Below, piece after piece: positions 1 through 45,142 of a DNA stretch of 64,000 nucleotides. The position numbers were made by a program, and so were the translations under genes. The notes under the pieces are model-generated. The model was not told the origin of the DNA and did not search any database. It saw only the letters and a list, made by a program, of their open reading frames with translations. The DNA comes from Rebecca billardiae RCC1528 (taxonomy: Eukaryota; Protista; Haptophyta), in the NCBI GenBank assembly GCA_965240325.2, contig OZ251240.1:1116001-1180000 (forward strand), given 5' to 3'. How positions within the stretch are numbered: the first letter of the stretch is position 1; each line of letters opens with the position of its first letter.

Positions 1-977
1 TGGTGCCAGAAGCGGCAGACAAAGTCGGGGTTTGTTCTCGCGCACAGCGAGTAGGCGCGCTCGCGCGTGACGAACGCGCCGCCGCCGTCGTCGTGCGGCC
101 GCTTGATGCGCTGCGCGGCCGCGTCGGATAGCCTGAACGCGCACTCCAGCTGCGCCTCCGCCGGCACCATCTTGGGCGGCAGCTGGAGGAAGCCGACCAT
201 CTGCCTGAGCACGCCAAGCCGGCGCGTGCGCGACGTGAGCGCCTCAAACGTCCACATGCCCAGCCGGCAGTTGACGGCGAGCTCGCGCCCGAGGTTGGGG
301 TTGCGGAAGGGCGTCGGCGTGTAGCACTGCTTGCGCGAGAAATCGCGGTACCGGTGCATCGTCCGGTTCCACAGCTTGGCGAAGCGGATCCCGTCGCGCG
401 CGAAGTCGTCCGCGTGGAACTTGCGCCTCGGGATCTGCGCGGTGTGGGAGCCGTATGGCGTGTGCTCGAGGTTGTACTCGGCGAAGAAGGCGTTGTACGG
501 GTCGCGCACGACGGCGATCGCCGAGGTGACTGCGAGCATCCGCCACACTTTCGTGCGGTTCAACGCGGGCCACGGCCGGATCAGGCGGATGGGGAGCGCG
601 CTCGAGAACTGAGCGTGATGAACCTTCACGACCACGACGTCGTGATCGACGCGGCCCTCGCCGGCGAAGCCTGCGGCGATGAGCCGCTTGTCCTTCTGGA
701 CGGAGCCCGTGCGCACGGCTGTCGCGCGCTCGAGCAGCATGCGCACCATCGTGTTCCCGCAGCCGGGCACCGTCCATAGGATCGGCGGCGCGTACCGCTG
801 CGCGCTGCCATCGCTCCCGATGAACTTGCCGCGATGGCGCAGGAACCGCGCCTGGGGCGAGGAGCAGCCAGCCGCTGCCTCGTCGGCGAGCGCGTCCGCC
901 TCGGCCGTGCTCTCTGGCGGGGCCGTCGCCGCTGCCAAGGCAAGCAGCGCCACCATGGCAGGCGCGATCGCCGGCAT
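1..977 (-). CDS. WSCD-like sulfotransferase-family protein, 3'-truncated by the window edge
   Basis: Open frame from ATG 977 to the window start (absent from the ORF track because it has no stop). Hydrophobic N-terminus MPAIAPAMVALLALAAA; motifs LWTVPGCGNTMVRMLLERATAVRTGS, GFAGE, VVKVHH and IAVVRDPYNAFFAEYN match the WSCD1/2-type sulfotransferase pattern. Confidence 0.75.
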   Translation of the reverse strand, partial: MPAIAPAMVALLALAAATAPPESTAEADALADEAAAGCSSPQARFLRHRGKFIGSDGSAQRYAPPILWTVPGCGNTMVRMLLERATAVRTGSVQKDKRLIAAGFAGEGRVDHDVVVVKVHHAQFSSALPIRLIRPWPALNRTKVWRMLAVTSAIAVVRDPYNAFFAEYNLEHTPYGSHTAQIPRRKFHADDFARDGIRFAKLWNRTMHRYRDFSRKQCYTPTPFRNPNLGRELAVNCRLGMWTFEALTSRTRRLGVLRQMVGFLQLPPKMVPAEAQLECAFRLSDAAAQRIKRPHDDGGGAFVTRERAYSLCARTNPDFVCRFWH

Positions 978-1149
978 GGGTGATCGACTGTCGACGGGCA
1001 AGCCCGGCGGGCGATGGCGGCGCGTGCTCCCGACGGCAACCGGCTACTTCGAGATTCAGATCTCCTGACCGATCTCGACATCATTCTCGTCGCGTTTCGA
1101 ATGCGCGAATGGCCGGCAGCAGCTGCAGAGCGGGTCGGTTCCTCCGACG

Positions 1150-3652
1150 ATGGTGGTGAAGATGCATCCGCCCAGCGCGCGGCCTCGTAGCCGCCCATCG
1201 ACGCCGACGGGCGCGACGCCATCTGCCGCAATGCCGTCCATCGCCAAGTTCGCGCGCCGGCCTTCGGCCGACGGCGCCCTCACGCGCATTGACTCCCTTC
1301 CTCTGAACCCGTCAGATGCCCATCTCCTGGCGAGCGCGCACAGCTGGCGCGATGAGAACGTCGCGCTTCGGCACAAGGTGGCGCAGATGCAGCAGCAGCA
1401 GGCGGAGTACGGTGTCCACGCCGCAAGGACGCGCTCTCGCCAGCCCTACCGCGCCGCGGACGAGAGCACGCGCCTCGCCGGACTGCAGCGCGAGAACGAG
1501 CAGCTGCTGAGACACAACGCAAAGCTGAGCGAGCAGGTGTGCGCATGGGCGCGGTGGGAGAGGGCGGAGGCTTGTCTGGGCGCATGCCTGCACCTTCCCC
1601 CCCGCGCGCTGCAGCCGCTGAGCCCAACCGCGGCGCGGGCCGGCCACGCGTCTGCCGCGCGCGCGCCCCTGGCGCAGCTCGTGCATGCGACGCAGGTGCT
1701 CACGCCCATGACGGGCGCGCTGCCTCGCACGATGCAGAACAGCCTGGGCATCATCTCCGCGGACTGCGCCGCCGCCGAGGCCGAGGTCTCGCGCCTCGCC
1801 GTCGACGTGCAGGCAGCCATGCTGGATTCGGTGCACGCGCTCGAGGGCGCGCACAGGGAGAACGCGCTGCTGCGCACGGCCGTCGATGCGCTCAAGGCGT
1901 CCAGCGAAGGTGTGCGCAACCCTCAGCTCGCGAGCGCGGGGCCAGCGTGCGCATGCGCGACCGCGCGACACCCGACGCGCGACGCTCGGCCCTGCACTGG
2001 GCTGCGCTCACGGCTGCGCTGCGTCCGCCACCGCCGACCAACTATCGCCGCGCCGCTGCGCAGGCGCGGCGGCGGGCGCCGCGGGCGCCGACGCAGAGAG
2101 CGCGGCGCGAGATCTGGAGCTCGGCGAGCTGCTCGCCGCGGCGCGCGCGGAGATCCTCACGCAGACTGCCCGCGCCGAGCGCGCCGAGCGCGAGCTCGCC
2201 GTGCTCCACGCCTCTCTGGAGGCGCTGAGTGCGGCCAACGGCCGGCTCCTTGCGGGTGAGGCCGAGGCGGCGCGGCTCCAGGAGCAGTTGGAGTCGGAGC
2301 GGGCGGCGCATGCGCGCGAGCTCGCGCTGTGGCAGCACGCGTACGCGGGCGCGACGAAGGAGCAGCCGGCGGCGCACACGCCGCCGGTACCGGCTGATCA
2401 GCAGCCGCAGCAGCGGCCGCGCACGCGCGCGCCGCCACCGCCGTCACTCGCGCCCCCGCCGCCGATACCGCCGCCCGTGCCGGCTGCCACCGACGTCGCG
2501 CCGCCCGCTGCACAGCCGGCGCCTGATGCCGGTGCGCCCGGTGTGCAAATGCCGCCGCAGGGGGTGCCGGCAACCGCCCTCCCATCGGGCTTGCCCTACG
2601 AGGTGGCTGCGCAGCAGCCGCTGCAGCCGCTGCAGCCGCTGCAGCCGCAACAGCCGCAACAGCCGCAGCTGCAGCAGCTGCAGCCGCAGCCGCCGCAGCC
2701 GCAGCAGCCGCAGCCGCAGCAGCCGCCACCGCAGCCTCAAGCTGACTCGGCAGCTGGTCAGCAGCCATTGCCAGCCGCGCAGCCCTTCACGCCGAGCACT
2801 CACTTCGACGGCCGAGCAGACCCCGTCACGCCCGCGTCGAGTGCGCCGACCGAGTCTGCTCATCAACCGCTAGAGCGTCACCCCTTGCCGGCGCACCTGC
2901 CAGTTGGGGCGGAGGCGCCGCTCGCGCCGGCCACACGCGCGGAGGCACACGCGCCGGAGCTCGGAGCGGCAGCAGCGCAGCCCTGCGGCTCGGGGACGCC
3001 GGGTGCGTGCGCCTCAGCGCAGCCGCTCGCGCCGGCCGCGCCGACGGCCGCCGCCTCGAGCGTGCCCCACCCGGCCGAGGGCGCACCTCCGCCTGCGCAG
3101 CAGCCGTCGGCACCGACAGCCGCCGGGCCGCAGCCGCTGCAGGCAGCAGCGGCGGCGGGCGGGCAGGACTCGTCCACGCGAGCGCCACAGTCGGGACAGC
3201 CGCTGCCGCAGCTGCAGCCTGCGGCTACGAGCGCGGAAGCACAGCAGGGTGTGGTGCGCACTGTGTCGACCGGCGCGGAGCAGCAGCCCGCGCCACAGAT
3301 CGGCCCCAGTCCGGCCGCGCTCGAGCGCACCGCATCCGCACAGCCCGCAGGCGCGCAGCTGCAGCCGCAGCCTGTGCAGGTGGCCAGCCCCTCGCCGGGC
3401 GCCGGGCTCGGAGCACCGACGGGCGGCGGCGTCACAGACCAGCAACCGGCTCGCCCTCTACCTTCGCGCAACGAGCCGCAGGGCCAGGGCGGGTCCGGAC
3501 TGCTAGCTGCCGCACCCAAGTTGGGCTTGGGCTCGCACTCGGCCACATCCGCGGCCATTCCGACTCCGAGCAGCATGCAGCCTCCTGCTGCTGTGGCTCC
3601 GGCAGTGAGCGCAACCACAGCAGAGCAGCCAGCAGGGCGGCCCGCGCAATAG
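1150..3652 (+). CDS. Hypothetical coiled-coil protein with Pro/Gln/Ala-rich C-terminus; 3 exons (introns 1537-1677, 1910-2063)
   Basis: GT..AG introns join ORF 1150 to ORF 1886..3652 in frame (E-G|AAAG). Heptad-like segments and CAGCCG repeats. Confidence 0.65.
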
Positions 3653-8649: not shown

Positions 8650-9550
8650 GATCGCTCCCGACAGACGTGCGCGCGTCCTCGAAGGGCGGGGGCGCGCGCT
8701 CTGCCCCGAAGACACGATATGCCGAGGTGTGCCCGGCAAAGGTGCCCACGCCCACCTGCCCCAGGCAACAGGTAGCCTGATTGGCGCCTGCGCCTTGCGC
8801 CCGCCCGCCCGTGCTACTCGCGAATCGTAGTTTTCGGCCGCATCGCGACTTTTTTGCGGGCAACTTTCGCCGCTCGCTCGCGAGCGAAGGAAGGCGAGAA
8901 AAGTGACAATGGCTGTCGACCTGTCCGGTATGGTACTCCGGTTCGTCTTCTGCTTCGAGTCTTCGACTCAACAAGCAGCCGGACTGATTTCAGCATGGAG
9001 GCGCCACTCAAAGTATGGAAAGCGCCCCTCACCTGCCTGCGCCTCTGTTTTGTGGCGGTGTCTTTGTGCAGTGTTGGATGGCGTCAATCACGCCTTAACC
9101 AAGTGTGCACGTTAAAACATAGTAAACTGTAAGACTGTCCGCTCCATGCTCCATGCATGCGGAGTGAGGTGCCTGTCCGCGTGTCCTGTCGGTGGGTCCC
9201 ATCCGACCGGCCAGCCAGCCCTGGCAGCCCACTCGTGGATGACTCGATCAGCCGGCAGTGGCATTGTCAACGCCGCACGAGCGCACACGACAGCGGGTGC
9301 CCTTCGGATTGGCGGCCAAGCTCGCGGAAGCTCGCGGTTGCGTGTAATGCCACTGCACGGTGGCTGCGACCACCGGCGGCGGCGCCGCGTGAAAGTGCCG
9401 CCACTCGCCAGCGCGGTCCCGGGGCGGCCGGGCCGCGCGGGTCGGAGCGGCGGTCACGGTAGCTCTGCGGGATGGCGCCTATTTGCCACTACGGCGGTGA
9501 TACTACTAGTAGCGTAGGGTAATATTCCACTTGCCACTACGGCGGCATTG

Positions 9551-10618
9551 TCATTGATGTGAATCGGGTGACGCCGCCGGTGAATTGGTGATGTTGGGCG
9601 CGATGCGGATGTCGTCCACGGCATAGCCATATTCACGCGCTTTGGCAGCCACGAGCTCGGCGACAGCGGCGTCGGCCCGCCGCAATTCCGCCCACGTGGG
9701 AGCGCGATTCAGTTTAGCGCCCCCGTGGTGTCGCGGGTTGACCGCTGCACGAGGCTGCTCCCCGCTCTTGGCAGCCGCAGGGCAGAGCGGGGATCCCAAG
9801 TGGCGCGCAAGCAACGCACAGATCTCGGCAGGCGGCGTGTCCTCCACCCGGTACCGCACGTCCGCCACGGCCTCCAGCTGCTCGTTCCATGTGAGCCAGT
9901 GCTTCGCCACGAGCACGAGAAAGTCGGGCTCCAGCCGACTCTCTGGCCGGACGAGCGCGCGAGGTCCCTGGCCGTGCCAAGGTGTGTAGTGCAGGATGTA
10001 CGCCCAGATCCGCCGGTACCGGTTGGCGAGACGTCCGCGCGGCTTGCGGTCGAACAGGGTGTACGGCGATTTCCAACACGGATGCGGCACGGCCGAGCAC
10101 GTGTGCTGCCCGTACACATGGCGCGCGAACTCCGAGAAGGACTTGATGACGTTCAGCGGGTGGCGCACCTGGTGGGCAACGACGCGGAAGAGCCGAGTCA
10201 CACGGTCGTCGCCGCTCGTCACGCCGCCTTGGATGTAGATCCGCTCCGGGGGGCTTAGCATCTGCGGGCAGCGCGCTGCCCACGACACGAGCTCGTGGCC
10301 GGGCACGTCTTTCTCGTGTTCAATGCGCGCGCCAAGCCGCCGGAGTGCGTCCGTCGTGGCCGTCGTGCCAGACGCTCCGGTGCCAGTGATCAGTACGCCA
10401 CCGATGCGCGTGGTCCCAGCCGAGTGCGCGCAGCTGGCATTGTACTTGCATAGTAATACTGCCTGCCGGCACGCGTCGTCATGGTAAGCCACAGGGAAGC
10501 CACGCACCGCCGCAGGCCCTGCGTCCGCTGCTGATGCGCCCACGAGCACTGCCAACATCGAGACGACCGGAGCGTAGAGGGAGGGGCGCGACGAGTCCAC
10601 AAGGCGAGGCGGGCACAT
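9551..10618 (-). CDS. Sulfotransferase-like P-loop protein (start uncertain)
   Basis: LITGTGASGTT, IEHEK, HQVRHPLNVIKS and YRVED motifs; hydrophobic N-terminal segment; intronless. Confidence 0.65.
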   Translation of the reverse strand: MCPPRLVDSSRPSLYAPVVSMLAVLVGASAADAGPAAVRGFPVAYHDDACRQAVLLCKYNASCAHSAGTTRIGGVLITGTGASGTTATTDALRRLGARIEHEKDVPGHELVSWAARCPQMLSPPERIYIQGGVTSGDDRVTRLFRVVAHQVRHPLNVIKSFSEFARHVYGQHTCSAVPHPCWKSPYTLFDRKPRGRLANRYRRIWAYILHYTPWHGQGPRALVRPESRLEPDFLVLVAKHWLTWNEQLEAVADVRYRVEDTPPAEICALLARHLGSPLCPAAAKSGEQPRAAVNPRHHGGAKLNRAPTWAELRRADAAVAELVAAKAREYGYAVDDIRIAPNITNSPAASPDSHQ

Positions 10619-11259
10619 CCGAGCTGAGGTCGTACGCAAGGCGAGTCGAAGGCGGGCGCTTCCTCGATGGCTGCAAGACCTCATCGCCCGACCGTTGGCT
10701 AGTCTGGCATCACCAGAAGGCAGAACGCGGCCGCCATTCCCTTGCCGACCGGCCGGAAGCTCAAGAACTGAACAAGTGCGCTCTCTGCTGACCAGTCCCT
10801 CTTTCAGCGATCAGTGTCTACTCTAACTAACTAAGCTGGAAAGCCTACAGCAGTAAGACTGTACCGTACGTAGCTGACGGCGCTGTGCCGAGGGCCGTAG
10901 GCTCCGAGGCTGTGCGGTGTACAATGCTGAATGCTGTGCGCGTCAACAGCTGACAAAGTCGCTCCCGGACCACGGCCGGCCTCGGCCCTGGTCCCTGGCC
11001 AAGGCACCCATCCGTAGGTATCGGAGCATCAGGCAGCCGAGCCCGAGGACGACTTGTTTGAGCCGCCGCGTCGACCAGCTATGCGGGCGGCGCAGGGTGC
11101 GGCAGATGGCACGCTGGTGATCATCGGCATGGCACCACGACACCCGATTGCTGGAAGTACGCGAGAGCCGGGCTCGTTCCGCGTGTGTGACGTGAATGCT
11201 CGGCCATGGCTCCGCAGGGGAGTGTGGTGAGCCACGTCGCACCAGCCGCGTGCGCGCGC

Positions 11260-41705: not shown

Positions 41706-41998
41706 CGTGGCGGCCGGCCGTGGCGCCGTGCGCGCCCCCCGGCACGAGATCGATCGTGCAAATCGCGCAAGGTGCGCCCGGCGTGTTCACTGAGCAGTGG
41801 ATCTCACGTCCGGCCGCGGCGGCGCATTTTCAATTTCGTCAGCAGAGTCGTAGTAAGTAACGACCTTGGCATCGCCCTCGGAAGGCACCGGCAAAGAAAT
41901 AGAGGGGGTAGAACCGAAAGCTCTCCCGATTAATATGGTTTCAGACTGCTCGCTCCGGAACACCGGGCTTCAGCTTCGTCACGCCCTCAGGCGCGGAG

Positions 41999-43064
41999 AT
42001 GCCCTGGTTGCTCCTCGCCCTGCACCTCGTCGCAGCCGCGCTGACTCTCGGCTCGTGCAGTGCACGCCCGACGTGCAGCCCGGGGCTTGAAGCCATGCGA
42101 CCACGCAGAAACTCCACCGACCAAACCGACGACGCGAGCGGCGCCGGCGATGGTGTCTCCAGGTGCGCCCGCGACCGGGCCTGAGCGTCGAGCCCCAAAC
42201 TTGCCCGCGTGGCGCGCGACTGCCCAACACAGAGATACTGCGCGTAATTTCGTGTCCCTAAAGTATGGAGCCAGCGGGGCAGTGTGCTTACCCACCGCTC
42301 GAACCTTGAGGGACACGAATCTCACCCGTTTTGGCGCCCCCGAACCGCCCTCGTTTCGTGCGCACTACAGGTTGGCGGCGAACTGGTGGGTTGGGGATAT
42401 CAACATGGCAAAGGCGCTGGCGGAGCACCTGACGGGCAACGGCACGCCCCACGACATCATCAAAGACCGAGCGCGGCATGTCCCCGGTGTCGTAGACGGA
42501 CGGATGGTGTACTACGTGAAGCCGGCCGGGCAGCCGAGCTATCTATGCCCACCGGCTCCTGTTTTCCAGCTCGAGCAGTTGTTGGCGCCCCTCTACGAGG
42601 ATGGGGCTGTCGAGGAGCGCGCGCTCGCTGCATTGCTCGCACGCGACGAGTTCGCCGAGGTGCTGCGGTCTGTCGCGCCCACGGTGGGCGTGTCGCTCGA
42701 TTCGTCGGACGGCGCGCACGGCACGGAGCTCGAGCCTCGGGCGAGAACACTCGGCCTCATCCTCGCACACAAGCCGTTGCGCGTGAATGACCGGCGAGAC
42801 GCGGGCGGCGGGCTCGTGAGCGCGTATGCGCTTCTCGAACGAAAGCTCGGCGTCGGGCACCAACTCGCGCCTCCCGCCCCGCCGCCCCCTGCTCCGGAGG
42901 CACCGCCTCCAGGATGGATGAGGGCTGCGGCCGCCTCGCGGCGCGCCAGCGCCCGTCGTCCTCGCCCCACCGTCGTCCGCCACAAAACGTCGTCCTCCGA
43001 ACTCGCCGACTGGGCGCCGATGCAACAGCGCGCCGACAGGATGAGGATACGTATAGTCGCGTAA
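41999..43064 (+). CDS. Cargo gene: signal-peptide protein of unknown function; intron 42163-42232
   Basis: MPWLLLALHLVAAALTLGSCSA leader; a 70-nt GT-AG intron joins ORF 41999 in frame to ORF 42060..43064 (VS-R|DTARN). Confidence 0.7.
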
Positions 43065-43326
43065 TAATCTGCTATGTAATAAGTACGTACGTAAATTACA
43101 TACAGTAATCCGGCGGCGAGCGCTGCTACTAGCAGTAGCAGGACTCACAGTGACAGTGTCACTGCCCCGAGTCATACAGACACAGCAGTGCCCGGCGCCG
43201 TGGCGCGCTGCTCACCTATATGTATATATAATATATCTGTGACTACTGATATGATGACACGTGACGATATATATATCATCGATGACGCGCTAACTGACAA
43301 TCATTGATGATACATCGTAGTCGAAG

Positions 43327-45012
43327 TCACTCGTCGTCAGCATGATCGCCGCTCACAGCAAAGGGGTCTGCACTGCCGCCCGCGCTGGCTGCATTGCCGA
43401 AGCACGCCTGCACGCCCTTCGTGATCAAGTTGAGGTGCTCGACATCAGCACCGTCATTGACCTCGTCGTCGAGCAGGCAGCGCTGCTGCTCGCTCTCGAT
43501 GTCTGCGAAGAACGAGTCCACCATGCGCTCATCAGCCTTCACCTCCTCTGCTGACTGCCCTTCGCCATCAGCCTCGTCGACGTCTCCAAGCGCAATCGCC
43601 TTGGCAAGCGACTCACGATGCGTCAGCATCGCCTCGGGCGCCGGCACGCTGAGCTGGGCGCCGGGCGACTTCGCCGCGACCGTAGCGAGCTTGGTGCGCA
43701 GGTTGGCCCGCTGGCTCTCCACGGTGAGCGACGTGAACATGTGATCGAGAGCCGTGCGTGCAAAGTTCGGGCCGCGCACGCGCATGTACTTGTCCACGAG
43801 GAACTCGAAGAGGGCCAGCTGCTCCGCCTCGGCAGGCTTGGGGTCGGGCAGCGTGGCAGCGAAGAGCGCTGCGCACTCCGCACTAGCCAGGATGAGCTTG
43901 GACGCCTCGAGCATGATGTCGCCCCTGACGAGTGCGATGTGGTCCCGAGTGAGGACGGCGACGACGTGCTCCTCCATCCTCCACACGAGCATGAATAGCT
44001 CCTTGCGTGGGAGGTAGAGGGCAGAGTCGTGCACGTTGCGCCTGAGCGTACGCACCGACGGCAGATCCCAGAGGGACACGACATCGCTGCTCGCGAGCCC
44101 GTTCGCCTTGAGCCACGCGAGCCAAAAGGGCCCCGCTTCCAGGAGCGCCTTGGTACCGTGGCAAGCGGCAGCCTGCACCTTGCGCATGAGCCAGCCGGTG
44201 AGGTAGTACAGGAGCTGGGCGCGGAGGTCCTTCACATCCGGCGAGCAGGTCGGTGGCACCTGGACGGGTGGGTGGGCGGCGAGCTTTTCGCACGTGGCCG
44301 CGAAGAGCGCCTCGTCCAGCTCGTCCAGGAGCGCGACGTGCAACATGGGCCGAGCGTTCACAGCTGACAAGCTCCGGATCGCCTCCTCTGCGCGCGCCGC
44401 GTGCTCCTGGATAAACGCCTGTCGTGTCTCACGCAGCTCCGAGTGGAAGGCCGAGCGCACGTTGCCGATCGCCGTGGTTGACTTCGCGCGGTGAGTCGCC
44501 ATCACGTCGACCATGGCCCGCACGCGCTCCTCGAGCTCGTCCCCGAGCGCCGAGGCCAGCTTGTCGAAGCGGGCTGGCGTGGGATCACCCATCAACATCG
44601 CCGCATGAGAACTCGTCCGGCAGAACTCGACGGCGCGCTTGACGATGAGCGACCTGTCGCCTAGCTGCTTCAGCGTCGACTCGACGAAGCCGCTCACCGG
44701 CGCCAGCTTCACACGCTGGGGCGGATCGAGGTAGCGCTTGTACGCGAGGGCGATCTGCCGCTGGCTGAGCTTGTGCCGCACCTTGATGAGCTTCAGCTCC
44801 AGCACGCGGTCGATCTGCGGCAAGCCGTTGGCGTTCCCCTTCGTCTTCCTCTTCTCCCACTCGGCGCTCTTCGCCTGGAATACGGCGACGAGCTCCGCCC
44901 GTGCGGCATCGGTGAGCATGGCTGCGGGGATCAGGGGCGGACGACGCCAGTCTTTGCCAAGTGCGGCGGCGCGGAGCTGGGGCAAGCCGTCCGGACTCTG
45001 AAGCCCGGTCAT
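43327..45012 (-). CDS. Transposon-associated protein with P-transposase C-terminal-like motifs; no recognisable DDE core or THAP
   Basis: 561-aa intact ORF inside the TIRs; LYYLTGWLMRK, ALYLPRKELF and YMRVR recall the YIAGY..K / GL.YPS / Y.R.R motifs. Confidence 0.6.
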   Translation of the reverse strand: MTGLQSPDGLPQLRAAALGKDWRRPPLIPAAMLTDAARAELVAVFQAKSAEWEKRKTKGNANGLPQIDRVLELKLIKVRHKLSQRQIALAYKRYLDPPQRVKLAPVSGFVESTLKQLGDRSLIVKRAVEFCRTSSHAAMLMGDPTPARFDKLASALGDELEERVRAMVDVMATHRAKSTTAIGNVRSAFHSELRETRQAFIQEHAARAEEAIRSLSAVNARPMLHVALLDELDEALFAATCEKLAAHPPVQVPPTCSPDVKDLRAQLLYYLTGWLMRKVQAAACHGTKALLEAGPFWLAWLKANGLASSDVVSLWDLPSVRTLRRNVHDSALYLPRKELFMLVWRMEEHVVAVLTRDHIALVRGDIMLEASKLILASAECAALFAATLPDPKPAEAEQLALFEFLVDKYMRVRGPNFARTALDHMFTSLTVESQRANLRTKLATVAAKSPGAQLSVPAPEAMLTHRESLAKAIALGDVDEADGEGQSAEEVKADERMVDSFFADIESEQQRCLLDDEVNDGADVEHLNLITKGVQACFGNAASAGGSADPFAVSGDHADDE

Positions 45013-45142
45013 TTCAGTCCGGGAGGTGAGCTTTCGGTTCTACCCCCTCTATTTCTTTGGCACCGGGACCAACCGTGCGTGCGCCGAGCAGCCGACTTGG
45101 CGGAGCGTCGCGCCACCCCCAATCGCGGCAATTCGCGCGAGG

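Follow-up and report, generated by a model that had tools for sequence, protein, structure and literature searches.

A 64,000-nucleotide stretch of Rebecca billardiae RCC1528 DNA (referred to as the window) was found to harbor a 3.2-kb non-autonomous element at positions 41892-45059, which is most probably an internally deleted copy of a two-gene DNA transposon of the P superfamily. The parental two-gene form appears to persist on contig 21 of the same genome with convergent genes for a catalytic protein, ORF1, that has no C-terminal domain (CTD), and for a second protein, ORF2, which may be that domain encoded separately.

Ends, target sites and copies of the element

The inverted repeat arms of the element (41892-41926 and 45025-45059) extend over 35 nt with 97% identity, and their outer 32 nt are perfect. 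Both arms are flanked by the same 7-bp target-site duplication (TSD); these ends and this TSD, described earlier in a sequence-only reading of the window, were both found. A search of the 72-Mb genome gave 13 occurrences of the 32-nt end and 0 of its reversed control, a number far above chance. Furthermore, the 12-nt inverted repeat ACCGGGCTTCAG is located about 50-70 nt inward of each element end. The P element of Drosophila carries subterminal repeats (PMC7776569); by analogy, the 12-nt repeat is a candidate transposase-binding site. Between the ends, two convergent open frames were seen, ORF1 on the plus strand and ORF2 on the minus strand, with the AT-rich spacer that the earlier reading had also reported (Table 1).

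Five full-length, nearly identical copies were detected in the genome, two each on contigs 23 and 7 and one on contig 3. Altogether, the five copies differ by four substitutions and one 2-bp indel, in agreement with the recent insertion proposed earlier. The search for other copies with different TSDs, also suggested in that reading, was positive: each copy is flanked by its own perfect 7-mer (GCACCGG, GTTTGGC, GAGGTTT, GGCCACT, and TTCGGAC). The TSD of a relative on contig 38 fits 8 bp. Segmental duplication as the origin of the five copies was ruled out because their flanks and TSDs are all different. The element in the window is a real, very recently mobile P-type transposon; apparently, it is still active and represents a clean example of an ordinary non-autonomous element of this type.

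Table 1. Features of the P-type element, with positions counted from the first letter of the window
Feature	Position	Strand	Remark
Left TSD, GCACCGG	41885..41891		Same 7-mer repeated at right flank; four other copies with other 7-mers
Left terminal inverted repeat	41892..41923	+	32 nt, perfect; begins CAAAG
Subterminal 12-nt inverted repeat	41962..41973, partner 44998-45009		100% complementary
ORF1, 5' stump of transposase gene	42060..42911	+	99.9% identity to contig 21
Deletion junction	42909..42911		About 2 nt of microhomology; 3444 bp of the contig-21 copy absent
Dispersed-repeat fragment, 3' part	42912..43048	+	Abundant repeat; same private indels as in the contig-21 copy
AT-rich spacer between convergent genes	43065..43326		45.8% GC as compared to 67.4% for the window
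ORF2, 561 aa, ATG start	43327..45012	-	GC3 0.85 as compared to GC2 0.45; intact
Right terminal inverted repeat	45028..45059	-	32 nt, perfect
Right TSD, GCACCGG	45060..45066		Copy of the left-flank 7-mer

The long copy on contig 21 and the origin of gene 1

The copy on contig 21 contains an extra 3.4 kb at the deletion point, and the frame of gene 1 runs there for 1322 codons. This copy consists, in order, of element bases 12-1020, an additional 3444 bp, bases 1018-1184, a 7.8-kb copia element nested in the spacer region, and bases 1193-3168. One end of this copy is intact and the other is missing its outer 11 nt. The spacer is also the segment with most divergence between the contig-21 and the window copy.

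ORF1 of the contig-21 copy matched TNP-like_RNaseH_N (PF21787) with 31.9 bits (E = 2e-7; curated cut-off 24.6). The match to the GBD family PF21788 reached only 15.3 bits (cut-off 24.8) at the correct position, and the weak GBD and RNaseH_C matches appeared in the correct order; in homologues, PF21788 was detected above the cut-off (L049, 25.9 bits; P0037, 36.7; P0038, 35.6; L066, 27.5). The contexts of the D, D, and E motifs are readable in the translation. Among PDB sequences, the sole match was the Drosophila P transposase (6p5a_A), over PHLIK..RN and ..EH.FG..R. Additionally, ORF1 shares 30% identity over 568 aa (E = 6e-61) with a metagenomic protein whose family scores above the cut-offs for both RNaseH_N and GBD. 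These matches identify contig-21 ORF1 as a DDE transposase of the P/THAP9 type whose RNase H fold is probably interrupted by a GTP-binding domain; together with the 7-bp TSDs and the ends of 32 bp, they corroborate the earlier assignment to the P superfamily. A family search of the genome detected a single TNP-like locus, that on contig 21.

The Pfam scan of contig-21 ORF1 gave no THAP match at E ≤ 1 and no other recognized DNA-binding domain. Of the relative anticipated by the sequence-only reading, with the same ends and a THAP/DDE transposase, the DDE enzyme and one shared intact end were thus recovered, whereas THAP was not. An atlas search with residues 110-720 was blank; a word-index search with residues 780-1322 was blank as well, though real relatives exist, and is therefore uninformative. 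A Cys/His-rich stretch of unassigned class was observed near residues 480-510. ORF1 ends about 98 residues past the catalytic E motif (RNaseH_C) and its relatives end 39-70 residues past it. In the Drosophila P transposase about 220 residues follow the RNaseH_C motif, as compared to 39-98 in ORF1 and P0035-P0037; Pfam detected no CTD in P0035-P0040. The CTD is shown by these translations to be absent from ORF1 and its examined relatives.

In the window copy, the plus-strand frame extends from a GTG at 42060 to 43064, with the first well-placed and likely ATG at 42405. Starting from the GTG, 284 of its codons are native; the final 50 codons, up to the stop at 43064, come from a dispersed-repeat fragment and the bases after it. 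This fragment is the sole foreign piece in the window element, and the contig-21 copy has it too. In the numbering of the 1322-codon frame, ORF1 is lost, together with its RNase H part, from codon ~289 into the repeat fragment beyond the ORF1 stop. Insertion of the 3.4 kb into a short ancestral form was rejected: the frame and a conserved N-terminal block cross the junction, and the right breakpoint lies inside the repeat, the other half of which is found only on contig 21. As judged from this alignment, gene 1 is a 5' transposase stump left by a 3.4-kb internal deletion and not captured cargo; hence, the element has no intact transposase, as had been stated before.

The 284 retained codons end within the conserved N-terminal block (residues 185-515) shared with the contig-25 subfamily. 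A Pfam scan of this part revealed no DNA-binding domain, and scans against Pfam and PHROGs gave no match for either ORF of the window. As compared to the KP derivative, the deletion cuts block 185-515 at residue 289, so that a KP-like repressor is at best a tentative interpretation; the stump probably lacks function and would, at most, interfere weakly in the manner of KP.

ORF2 and the C-terminal domain of P transposase

The contig-21 copy carries ORF2 as well, differing by 4 substitutions over 1686 bp. Three of the four are non-synonymous, and a dN/dS-style reading of selection is uninformative with only four differences. Remote relatives of ORF2 numbered 21, and the family comprises about 20 metagenomic and transcriptomic members. 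On four metagenome contigs (L048, L049, L066, and L070), relatives with 24-30% identity are convergent to TNP-like transposases. At three further metagenome loci no partner gene was detected beside the ORF2 homologue, these contigs being short or perhaps transcripts. No convincing inverted ends were detected in a search of L048, L049, and L070; these contigs probably do not reach the element ends. Within the genome, contigs 25 and 2 harbor a sister subfamily with the identical layout, and all ORF2-like loci are located within related elements, bar one diverged paralogue on contig 3. Five to six copies of ORF2 are present as compared to one of ORF1. Since the long copy contains ORF2 and relatives of ORF2 are paired convergently with TNP-like transposases on the four metagenome contigs, the distribution of the gene marks it as native to the lineage, being the lineage's own second gene.

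BLASTP revealed no similarity between ORF2 and ORF1; therefore, ORF2 did not arise by recent inverted duplication of a part of ORF1. A word-index search returned only the self-match. SGT1, suggested with low recognition by an atlas search, was dropped as an identity because it had no other backing.

In the ORF2 protein, three helices at residues ~29-102 form a homeodomain-like region; a helical middle and then a CTD-like core (~256-428) follow, and the tail is acidic. AF2 models reached pLDDT values of 72 and 84. Out of 48,161 chains, residues 617-734 of the P transposase (6p5a_B) ranked top for both the whole-protein and the domain model with Z 9.6, a score that has to be read against the structure-search guidance that Z under ~13 can reflect a common arrangement for helical domains. 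All 118 of 118 residues were aligned with an rmsd of 3.0-3.3 Å; the runner-up chains reached Z 7.4 and Z 6.9. Residues 29-102 resemble homeodomains with Z 5-6, and the strongest conservation within the family was found in the CTD-like core, not in the helix-turn-helix (HTH). Foldseek returned only noise for both models, without the CTD match, and the family profile did not match any PDB sequence. At the sequence level, ORF2 could not be connected to the canonical CTD: Pfam gave no match for ORF2, and among its relatives a single one matched THAP9_C, at E 0.14 only. A genome search with THAP9_C gave no match either and is uninformative since the controls were silent, too. From the models, we predict for the conserved core of ORF2 a fold that resembles the CTD of the P transposase from Drosophila.

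A putative two-subunit transposase and its alternatives

We slightly favor the interpretation that ORF2 is a detached CTD subunit, which would join ORF1 on the transposon ends and contact both transposon and target DNA, by analogy with the tethered CTD in Drosophila. In the solved Drosophila complex, the CTD is carried on a flexible, disordered linker and is packed against the other subunit, which makes a CTD working in trans plausible (PMC7776569). The 3.4-kb deletion reduced ORF1 to a stump with 50 foreign codons and left ORF2 intact; the window copy would provide only the tail subunit and rely on the single catalytic gene on contig 21. The ORF1 protein encoded by this only TNP-like locus in the assembly is the putative source of the enzyme that moved the copies, in support of the mobilization in trans suggested earlier. 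The contig-21 copy itself would be an immobile helper because one of its ends lacks the 11 outermost nt; with its damaged end it resembles the laboratory 'wings-clipped' transposase source. The sequence-only reading had also considered one half of a split system and came close, though in an unforeseen sense: gene 2 resembles a CTD split off from the transposase.

Chances are about even that a whole P lineage in GC-rich marine protists uses a split transposase composed of a catalytic gene and a stand-alone CTD/HTH gene, both of them needed. As activity would then require both proteins, expression of the second gene, and not regulated splicing as in Drosophila, would decide between inactive and active enzyme, and deletion copies would persist as small-subunit donors.

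ORF2 could also be a regulator instead of a required subunit, a free CTD-like protein or decoy that modulates or inhibits ORF1 like the CTD-less or truncated P proteins repressing transposition in Drosophila. Amplified deletion copies would then increase the dose of the inhibitor, and five to six ORF2 genes for one ORF1 as well as the CTD-like fold are consistent with this. The Drosophila protein forms with and without the C-terminal third indeed have opposite activities (PMC7776569). However, since all examined ORF1 relatives are without a CTD, an externally supplied CTD is the simpler route to an active enzyme; furthermore, the pairing of ORF1 and ORF2 is kept across ~30% protein identity, and the copies transposed recently although several ORF2 genes were present. 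We regard a regulatory role as rather unlikely.

It is improbable that the likeness to the CTD merely reflects a common helical arrangement and that ORF2 is an unrelated accessory protein, binding DNA via its N-terminal HTH as a parallel to the second, Myb-like protein encoded by PIF/Harbinger elements. The homeodomain-like N-terminus, the modest Z for an all-helical domain, and the silence of Foldseek and sequence profiles agree with such a protein; yet the CTD topped the chain searches twice with full target coverage and 2-3 Z above the next chain, ORF2 adjoins P-type transposases that are missing exactly this domain, and conservation peaks in the core. The cargo carrier proposed by the sequence-only reading, a Pack-type P element with two captured host genes, would account for short copies without intact transposase and for two ORFs without Pfam match. 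This proposal is hardly tenable: gene 1 aligns collinearly, at 99.9% identity, with the beginning of the transposase gene on contig 21, gene 2 belongs to the parental element and to elements of distant relatives, and the ORF2-like loci lie inside related elements except for the contig-3 paralogue.

The element shares with the Drosophila P element inverted ends of 31-32 bp, subterminal inverted repeats, target duplications of 7-8 bp, a DDE RNase H transposase with a GTP-binding insertion (a probable one in ORF1), and few full-length copies accompanied by amplified deletion copies needing transposase in trans. It differs in that no THAP was found, the TSD is 7 bp instead of 8, ORF1 comprises 1322 codons, including a long N-terminal region that is unrelated, and the CTD-like domain is encoded by a separate gene on the opposite strand and not within the transposase. 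PIF/Harbinger, with its Myb-like protein, and MuDR also combine a transposase with a second element-encoded protein, and the ORF2 N-terminus is HTH-like; mudrA and mudrB of MuDR are convergent, matching the layout of ORF1 and ORF2. These elements, however, belong to other superfamilies, and their second protein is not known to be a domain detached from the canonical transposase. Galileo and 1360 also have a P-superfamily transposase and 7-bp target duplications (PMC4168063). Galileo differs by very long, internally repetitive ends and by one THAP-bearing transposase gene with no second gene. The catalytic core is homologous to that of human and zebrafish THAP9/Pdre, whereas in THAP9 proteins a single polypeptide contains both THAP and the C-terminal domain, and the TSDs are 8 bp long. 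Zebrafish Pdre is present as one full-length copy and many internally deleted copies with TSDs (PMC7776569).

The interest of the window element rests in its family and not in the non-autonomous copy itself. Apparently active P-like elements are extended to a GC-rich alga and environmental protists, and the 'orphan' ORF2 family gains a context and a testable role. The compact pair of helper and mini-element, with 32-bp ends, a catalytic gene, and a small subunit, may be a genetic tool for such algae. If ORF2 is a detached CTD, this would be, so far as searched, the first P-type transposase made of two separately encoded subunits and a natural experiment on the CTD, as the C-terminal third containing this domain separates active transposase from repressor in Drosophila.

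Structure, copies and insertion site of the element

The terminal inverted repeats, target-site duplication (TSD), two convergent genes and AT-rich spacer described by the sequence-only reading were all borne out by the sequence. The spacer comprises 262 bp with 45.8% GC as compared to 67.4% GC in the window.

Coordinates of the element, its relatives and associated features (plain numbers, window positions; element bases run from 1 to 3168 from the left end; G000, genome assembly; C, its contig; L, extracted locus or metagenome contig)
Feature	Position	Strand	Remarks
Inverted repeat arms	41892-41926 and 45025-45059		35 nt at 97%, outer 32 nt perfect, start CAAAG
7-bp TSD GCACCGG	41885-41891 and 45060-45066		directly outside both ends
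ORF1 frame (gene 1)	42060-43064	+	GTG start; ATG at 42405
ORF2 frame (gene 2)	45012-43327	-	ATG start, 561 aa; convergent with ORF1
Imperfect hairpin	42249-42319		upstream of likely ORF1 start codon; 23 nt, 83% complementary, 25-nt loop
Dispersed repeat	42912-43048; other examples L011:1501-1767, L042:1501-1768		starts ACAGTTTACTAAGAATAAGAGACGC
Contig-21 copy, part 1	element bases 12-1020		99.9% identity
Contig-21 copy, part 2			3444 bp absent from short copies
Contig-21 copy, part 3	element bases 1018-1184		
Contig-21 copy, part 4	G000:C21:1524521-1532329		7.8-kb Ty1/copia retrotransposon nested in AT-rich spacer; RVT_2, E 7e-49
Open frame of Ty1/copia insert	L034:1112-7798	-	uninterrupted 2229 codons; RVT_2 and SH3_retrovirus
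Contig-21 copy, part 5	element bases 1193-3168		
Sister subfamily	G000:C25:402887-405933 (L064:4887-7933)		about 3.05 kb
Sister subfamily, duplicate	L065:4887-7927		on 23-kb contig C2
Contig-38 derivative	G000:C38:71415-73542 (L032:1416-3543)		2.1 kb; 83% identity over element bases 1-1020
Contig-3 ORF2 paralogue	G000:C3:658772-660922 (L062:6773-8923)	-	open frame 716 aa, 30% identical
ORF2 homologue adjoining Helitron-like genes	L047:2768-7169 and 9515-11074		11.7-kb metagenome contig

The whole assembly (72 Mb, 41 contigs; the window lies on contig 23) was searched at the DNA level and contained five full-length copies, two each on contigs 23 and 7 and one on contig 3. Four substitutions and one 2-bp indel are the only differences among them. 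Each is bordered by its own perfect 7-bp TSD (GCACCGG, GTTTGGC, GAGGTTT, GGCCACT, TTCGGAC) within unrelated flanks; hence, the further copies with different duplications that had been proposed as support exist, four in number. The window element is mobile and moved recently. Allowing ≤3 mismatches, the 32-nt end occurred at 13 genome sites (10 in the five copies, one on contig 21, two on contig 38) and its reversed control at none; the same search revealed no swarm of short MITE derivatives.

The ATG (45143) of a plus-strand ORF, whose protein starts MGASQSQ, follows 77 bp after the window copy, and on the other side a divergent minus-strand ORF starts (41705) at a distance of 186 bp; upon removal of the element, the two would be about 263 bp apart. 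The site thus looks like a promoter-type site, which P elements are known to favour.

Gene 1 and the long copy on contig 21

The contig-21 copy stretches across 14 kb, and its gene 1 frame extends to 1322 codons. The Ty1/copia insert in its spacer leaves both P-element genes undamaged. Pfam analysis of this ORF1 revealed TNP-like_RNaseH_N (E 2e-7, above the curated cut-off) as well as TNP-like_GBD and TNP-like_RNaseH_C, both below cut-off and in the correct order. The sole match among PDB sequences was the Drosophila P element transposase, over the motifs ..SD.PHLIK..RN and ..EH.FG..R; furthermore, the acidic-residue contexts FDE, CDGAGEN and LEHHFG were seen in the translation. ORF1 shared 30% identity across 568 residues (E 6e-61) with a metagenomic protein whose close relatives exceed the Pfam cut-offs for RNaseH_N and GBD. 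On these grounds contig-21 ORF1 encodes a P-type transposase; it is the one TNP-like catalytic gene of this genome. A relative with the same end encoding a THAP/DDE transposase had been anticipated; the P-type transposase was found, a THAP domain was searched for in it and not detected.

A C-terminal domain (CTD) inside the transposase polypeptide was likewise looked for and not found. The catalytic E of the Drosophila P transposase is E531. ORF1 ends about 98 residues past its catalytic E motif, and three of its relatives (P0035, P0036 and P0037, of which P0037 is an MMETSP transcript annotated as complete) end 39-53 residues past the RNaseH_C match; the Pfam CTD is absent from all of P0035-P0040. 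The Drosophila CTD comprises residues 566-751 (PMC10824691), reaching about 220 residues past E531.

Since the long frame reads as a P-type transposase, the short copies are internal deletion products and their gene 1 is a transposase stump. The left breakpoint lies at about codon 289 of ORF1, the right one within a fragment of about 300 bp of an abundant dispersed repeat 3' of the contig-21 ORF1 stop, with about 2 nt of microhomology at the junction; the final 50 codons of the stump are read out of this repeat. The short copies also carry indels that are private to the repeat fragment of contig 21, and these tie them to a contig-21-type parent. Insertion of the 3.4 kb into a short ancestor was rejected, because an N-terminal block conserved in a sister subfamily (residues 185-515) crosses the breakpoint uninterrupted. 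Deletion cut the stump within this block and removed a Cys/His-rich stretch near residues 480-510; a repressor role like that of KP, the deleted Drosophila form, is possible but unsupported. At least 40 copies of the dispersed repeat were scored out of 961 first-look candidates. Most extend past the point where the fragment in the P-like element ends, and the repeat may form the terminus of a bigger element.

The sister subfamily, with ends about 90% similar to the window element, has the same layout of an ORF1 N-terminal part (33-39% amino acid identity) and a convergent ORF2 (35%, two in-frame TGA), and is a second, independent short form of stump plus ORF2. Contig 2, which carries its duplicate, appears to be a haplotig of this part of contig 25 or to duplicate it. 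The contig-38 element is an older deletion derivative in which ORF2 is mostly lost and one end has mutated and now reads AAAAG; the flanking sequence agrees with a duplication of 8 bp (CAGCGCGC), not 7 bp.

ORF2 as second gene of the family

ORF2 showed strong coding periodicity (GC3 0.85 vs GC2 0.45). It is intact on contig 21, with four substitutions in 1686 bp relative to the window copy, and the adjacent spacer carries many substitutions and indels in the same comparison. A word-index search returned nothing beyond ORF2 itself; an exhaustive phmmer search revealed 21 relatives (22-41% identical), one an MMETSP transcript and the others metagenomic. Four environmental contigs (L048, L049, L066, L070) each carry an ORF2 homologue in tail-to-tail arrangement with a TNP-like homologue of ORF1; among these transposases are some only 62% identical to one another, and their identity to contig-21 ORF1 is about 30%. 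The sequence-only reading had regarded the element as a cargo carrier. Because ORF2 is intact in the contig-21 copy, paired with TNP-like transposases and found in the same layout in the sister subfamily, these comparisons identify it as a native second gene rather than captured host cargo; with gene 1 a transposase stump, the cargo reading was abandoned.

Elsewhere, an ORF2 homologue adjoins Helitron-like genes (DUF6570 and PIF1 helicase), not a TNP-like transposase. The roughly 8 kb flanking the contig-3 paralogue on each side contain neither TIR-like sequence nor ORF1 homology; this paralogue may be a domesticated form of the second gene.

An AlphaFold2 model of ORF2, built from the family alignment, was all-helical (mean pLDDT 72). 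Foldseek returned no match; an exhaustive VIA-align search of 48,161 chains ranked first 6p5a_B, the CTD of the Drosophila P element transposase (residues 617-734). All 118 of 118 target residues were aligned to model residues 256-428 (Z 9.6, which the program's own guidance makes a modest score for helical domains; rmsd 3.3 Å), and the runner-up (Z 7.4) matched a different region. With a separate model of residues 240-450 (pLDDT 84, pTM 0.78), 6p5a_B again ranked first (Z 9.6, rmsd 3.0 Å, 118/118 residues), followed by a chain at Z 6.9; only four chains reached Z ≥ 5. Within the ORF2 family, conservation is highest in the CTD-matching region, whose motifs include LLYY.(A/T)GW, LP, F..VW..E..Y..LLT and Y..MRGRDF. 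Sequence methods gave no link between ORF2 and the canonical CTD: PDB sequences searched with a family profile yielded no hit, and one relative matched THAP9_C at E 0.14. The structural match is raised above coincidence because the domain picked from all these chains is the one absent from the neighbouring gene; we lean slightly towards ORF2 being a transposase CTD encoded on its own. Residues 29-102 matched homeodomains in many rows at Z 5-6 and are, as a lead, a candidate DNA-binding helix-turn-helix.

Proposed mode of action and place among P elements

At its left end the contig-21 copy is missing the outermost 11 nt, and it is therefore probably immobile; its ORF1 and ORF2 frames are both open. 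Its ORF1 protein would move the short copies in trans, and the CTD function would come from ORF2 made by any copy. Of the five short-copy ORF2 genes, three are intact, and two carry a frameshift that changes no more than the final ~14 residues of the acidic tail. The CTD seen in the Drosophila strand-transfer complex consists entirely of helices, and a flexible stretch of disordered chain connects it with the RNase H domain (PMC7776569). Working across subunits on a floppy tether, it is the kind of domain that could be separately encoded. The Drosophila 66-kDa protein, without the C-terminal third, does not catalyze transposition and represses it (PMC7776569); speculatively, ORF2 expression might be the switch here, a role played by regulated splicing in flies.

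The family shares with the P superfamily the RNase H core, a 7-8-bp TSD and ends of about 31 bp. The GTP-binding insertion domain exceeds the Pfam cut-off in relatives and is sub-threshold in contig-21 ORF1. The family differs from the canonical P element in that neither a THAP domain nor a CTD was found in the transposase polypeptide, and is thus a divergent P-like lineage. Full-text searches of the literature, Repbase reports aside, brought up no account of P-type elements that possess a second gene or a detached CTD. The P-type assignment of the sequence-only reading, based here on RNase H core, 7-bp TSD and ends, stands, as does non-autonomy, the transposase gene being internally deleted in the short copies; movement in trans is likewise judged right. 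The window element itself is an ordinary deletion derivative. The interest lies in the family, a P-like transposon with two genes, the second of which may, by a narrow balance of probability, be a CTD encoded alone.
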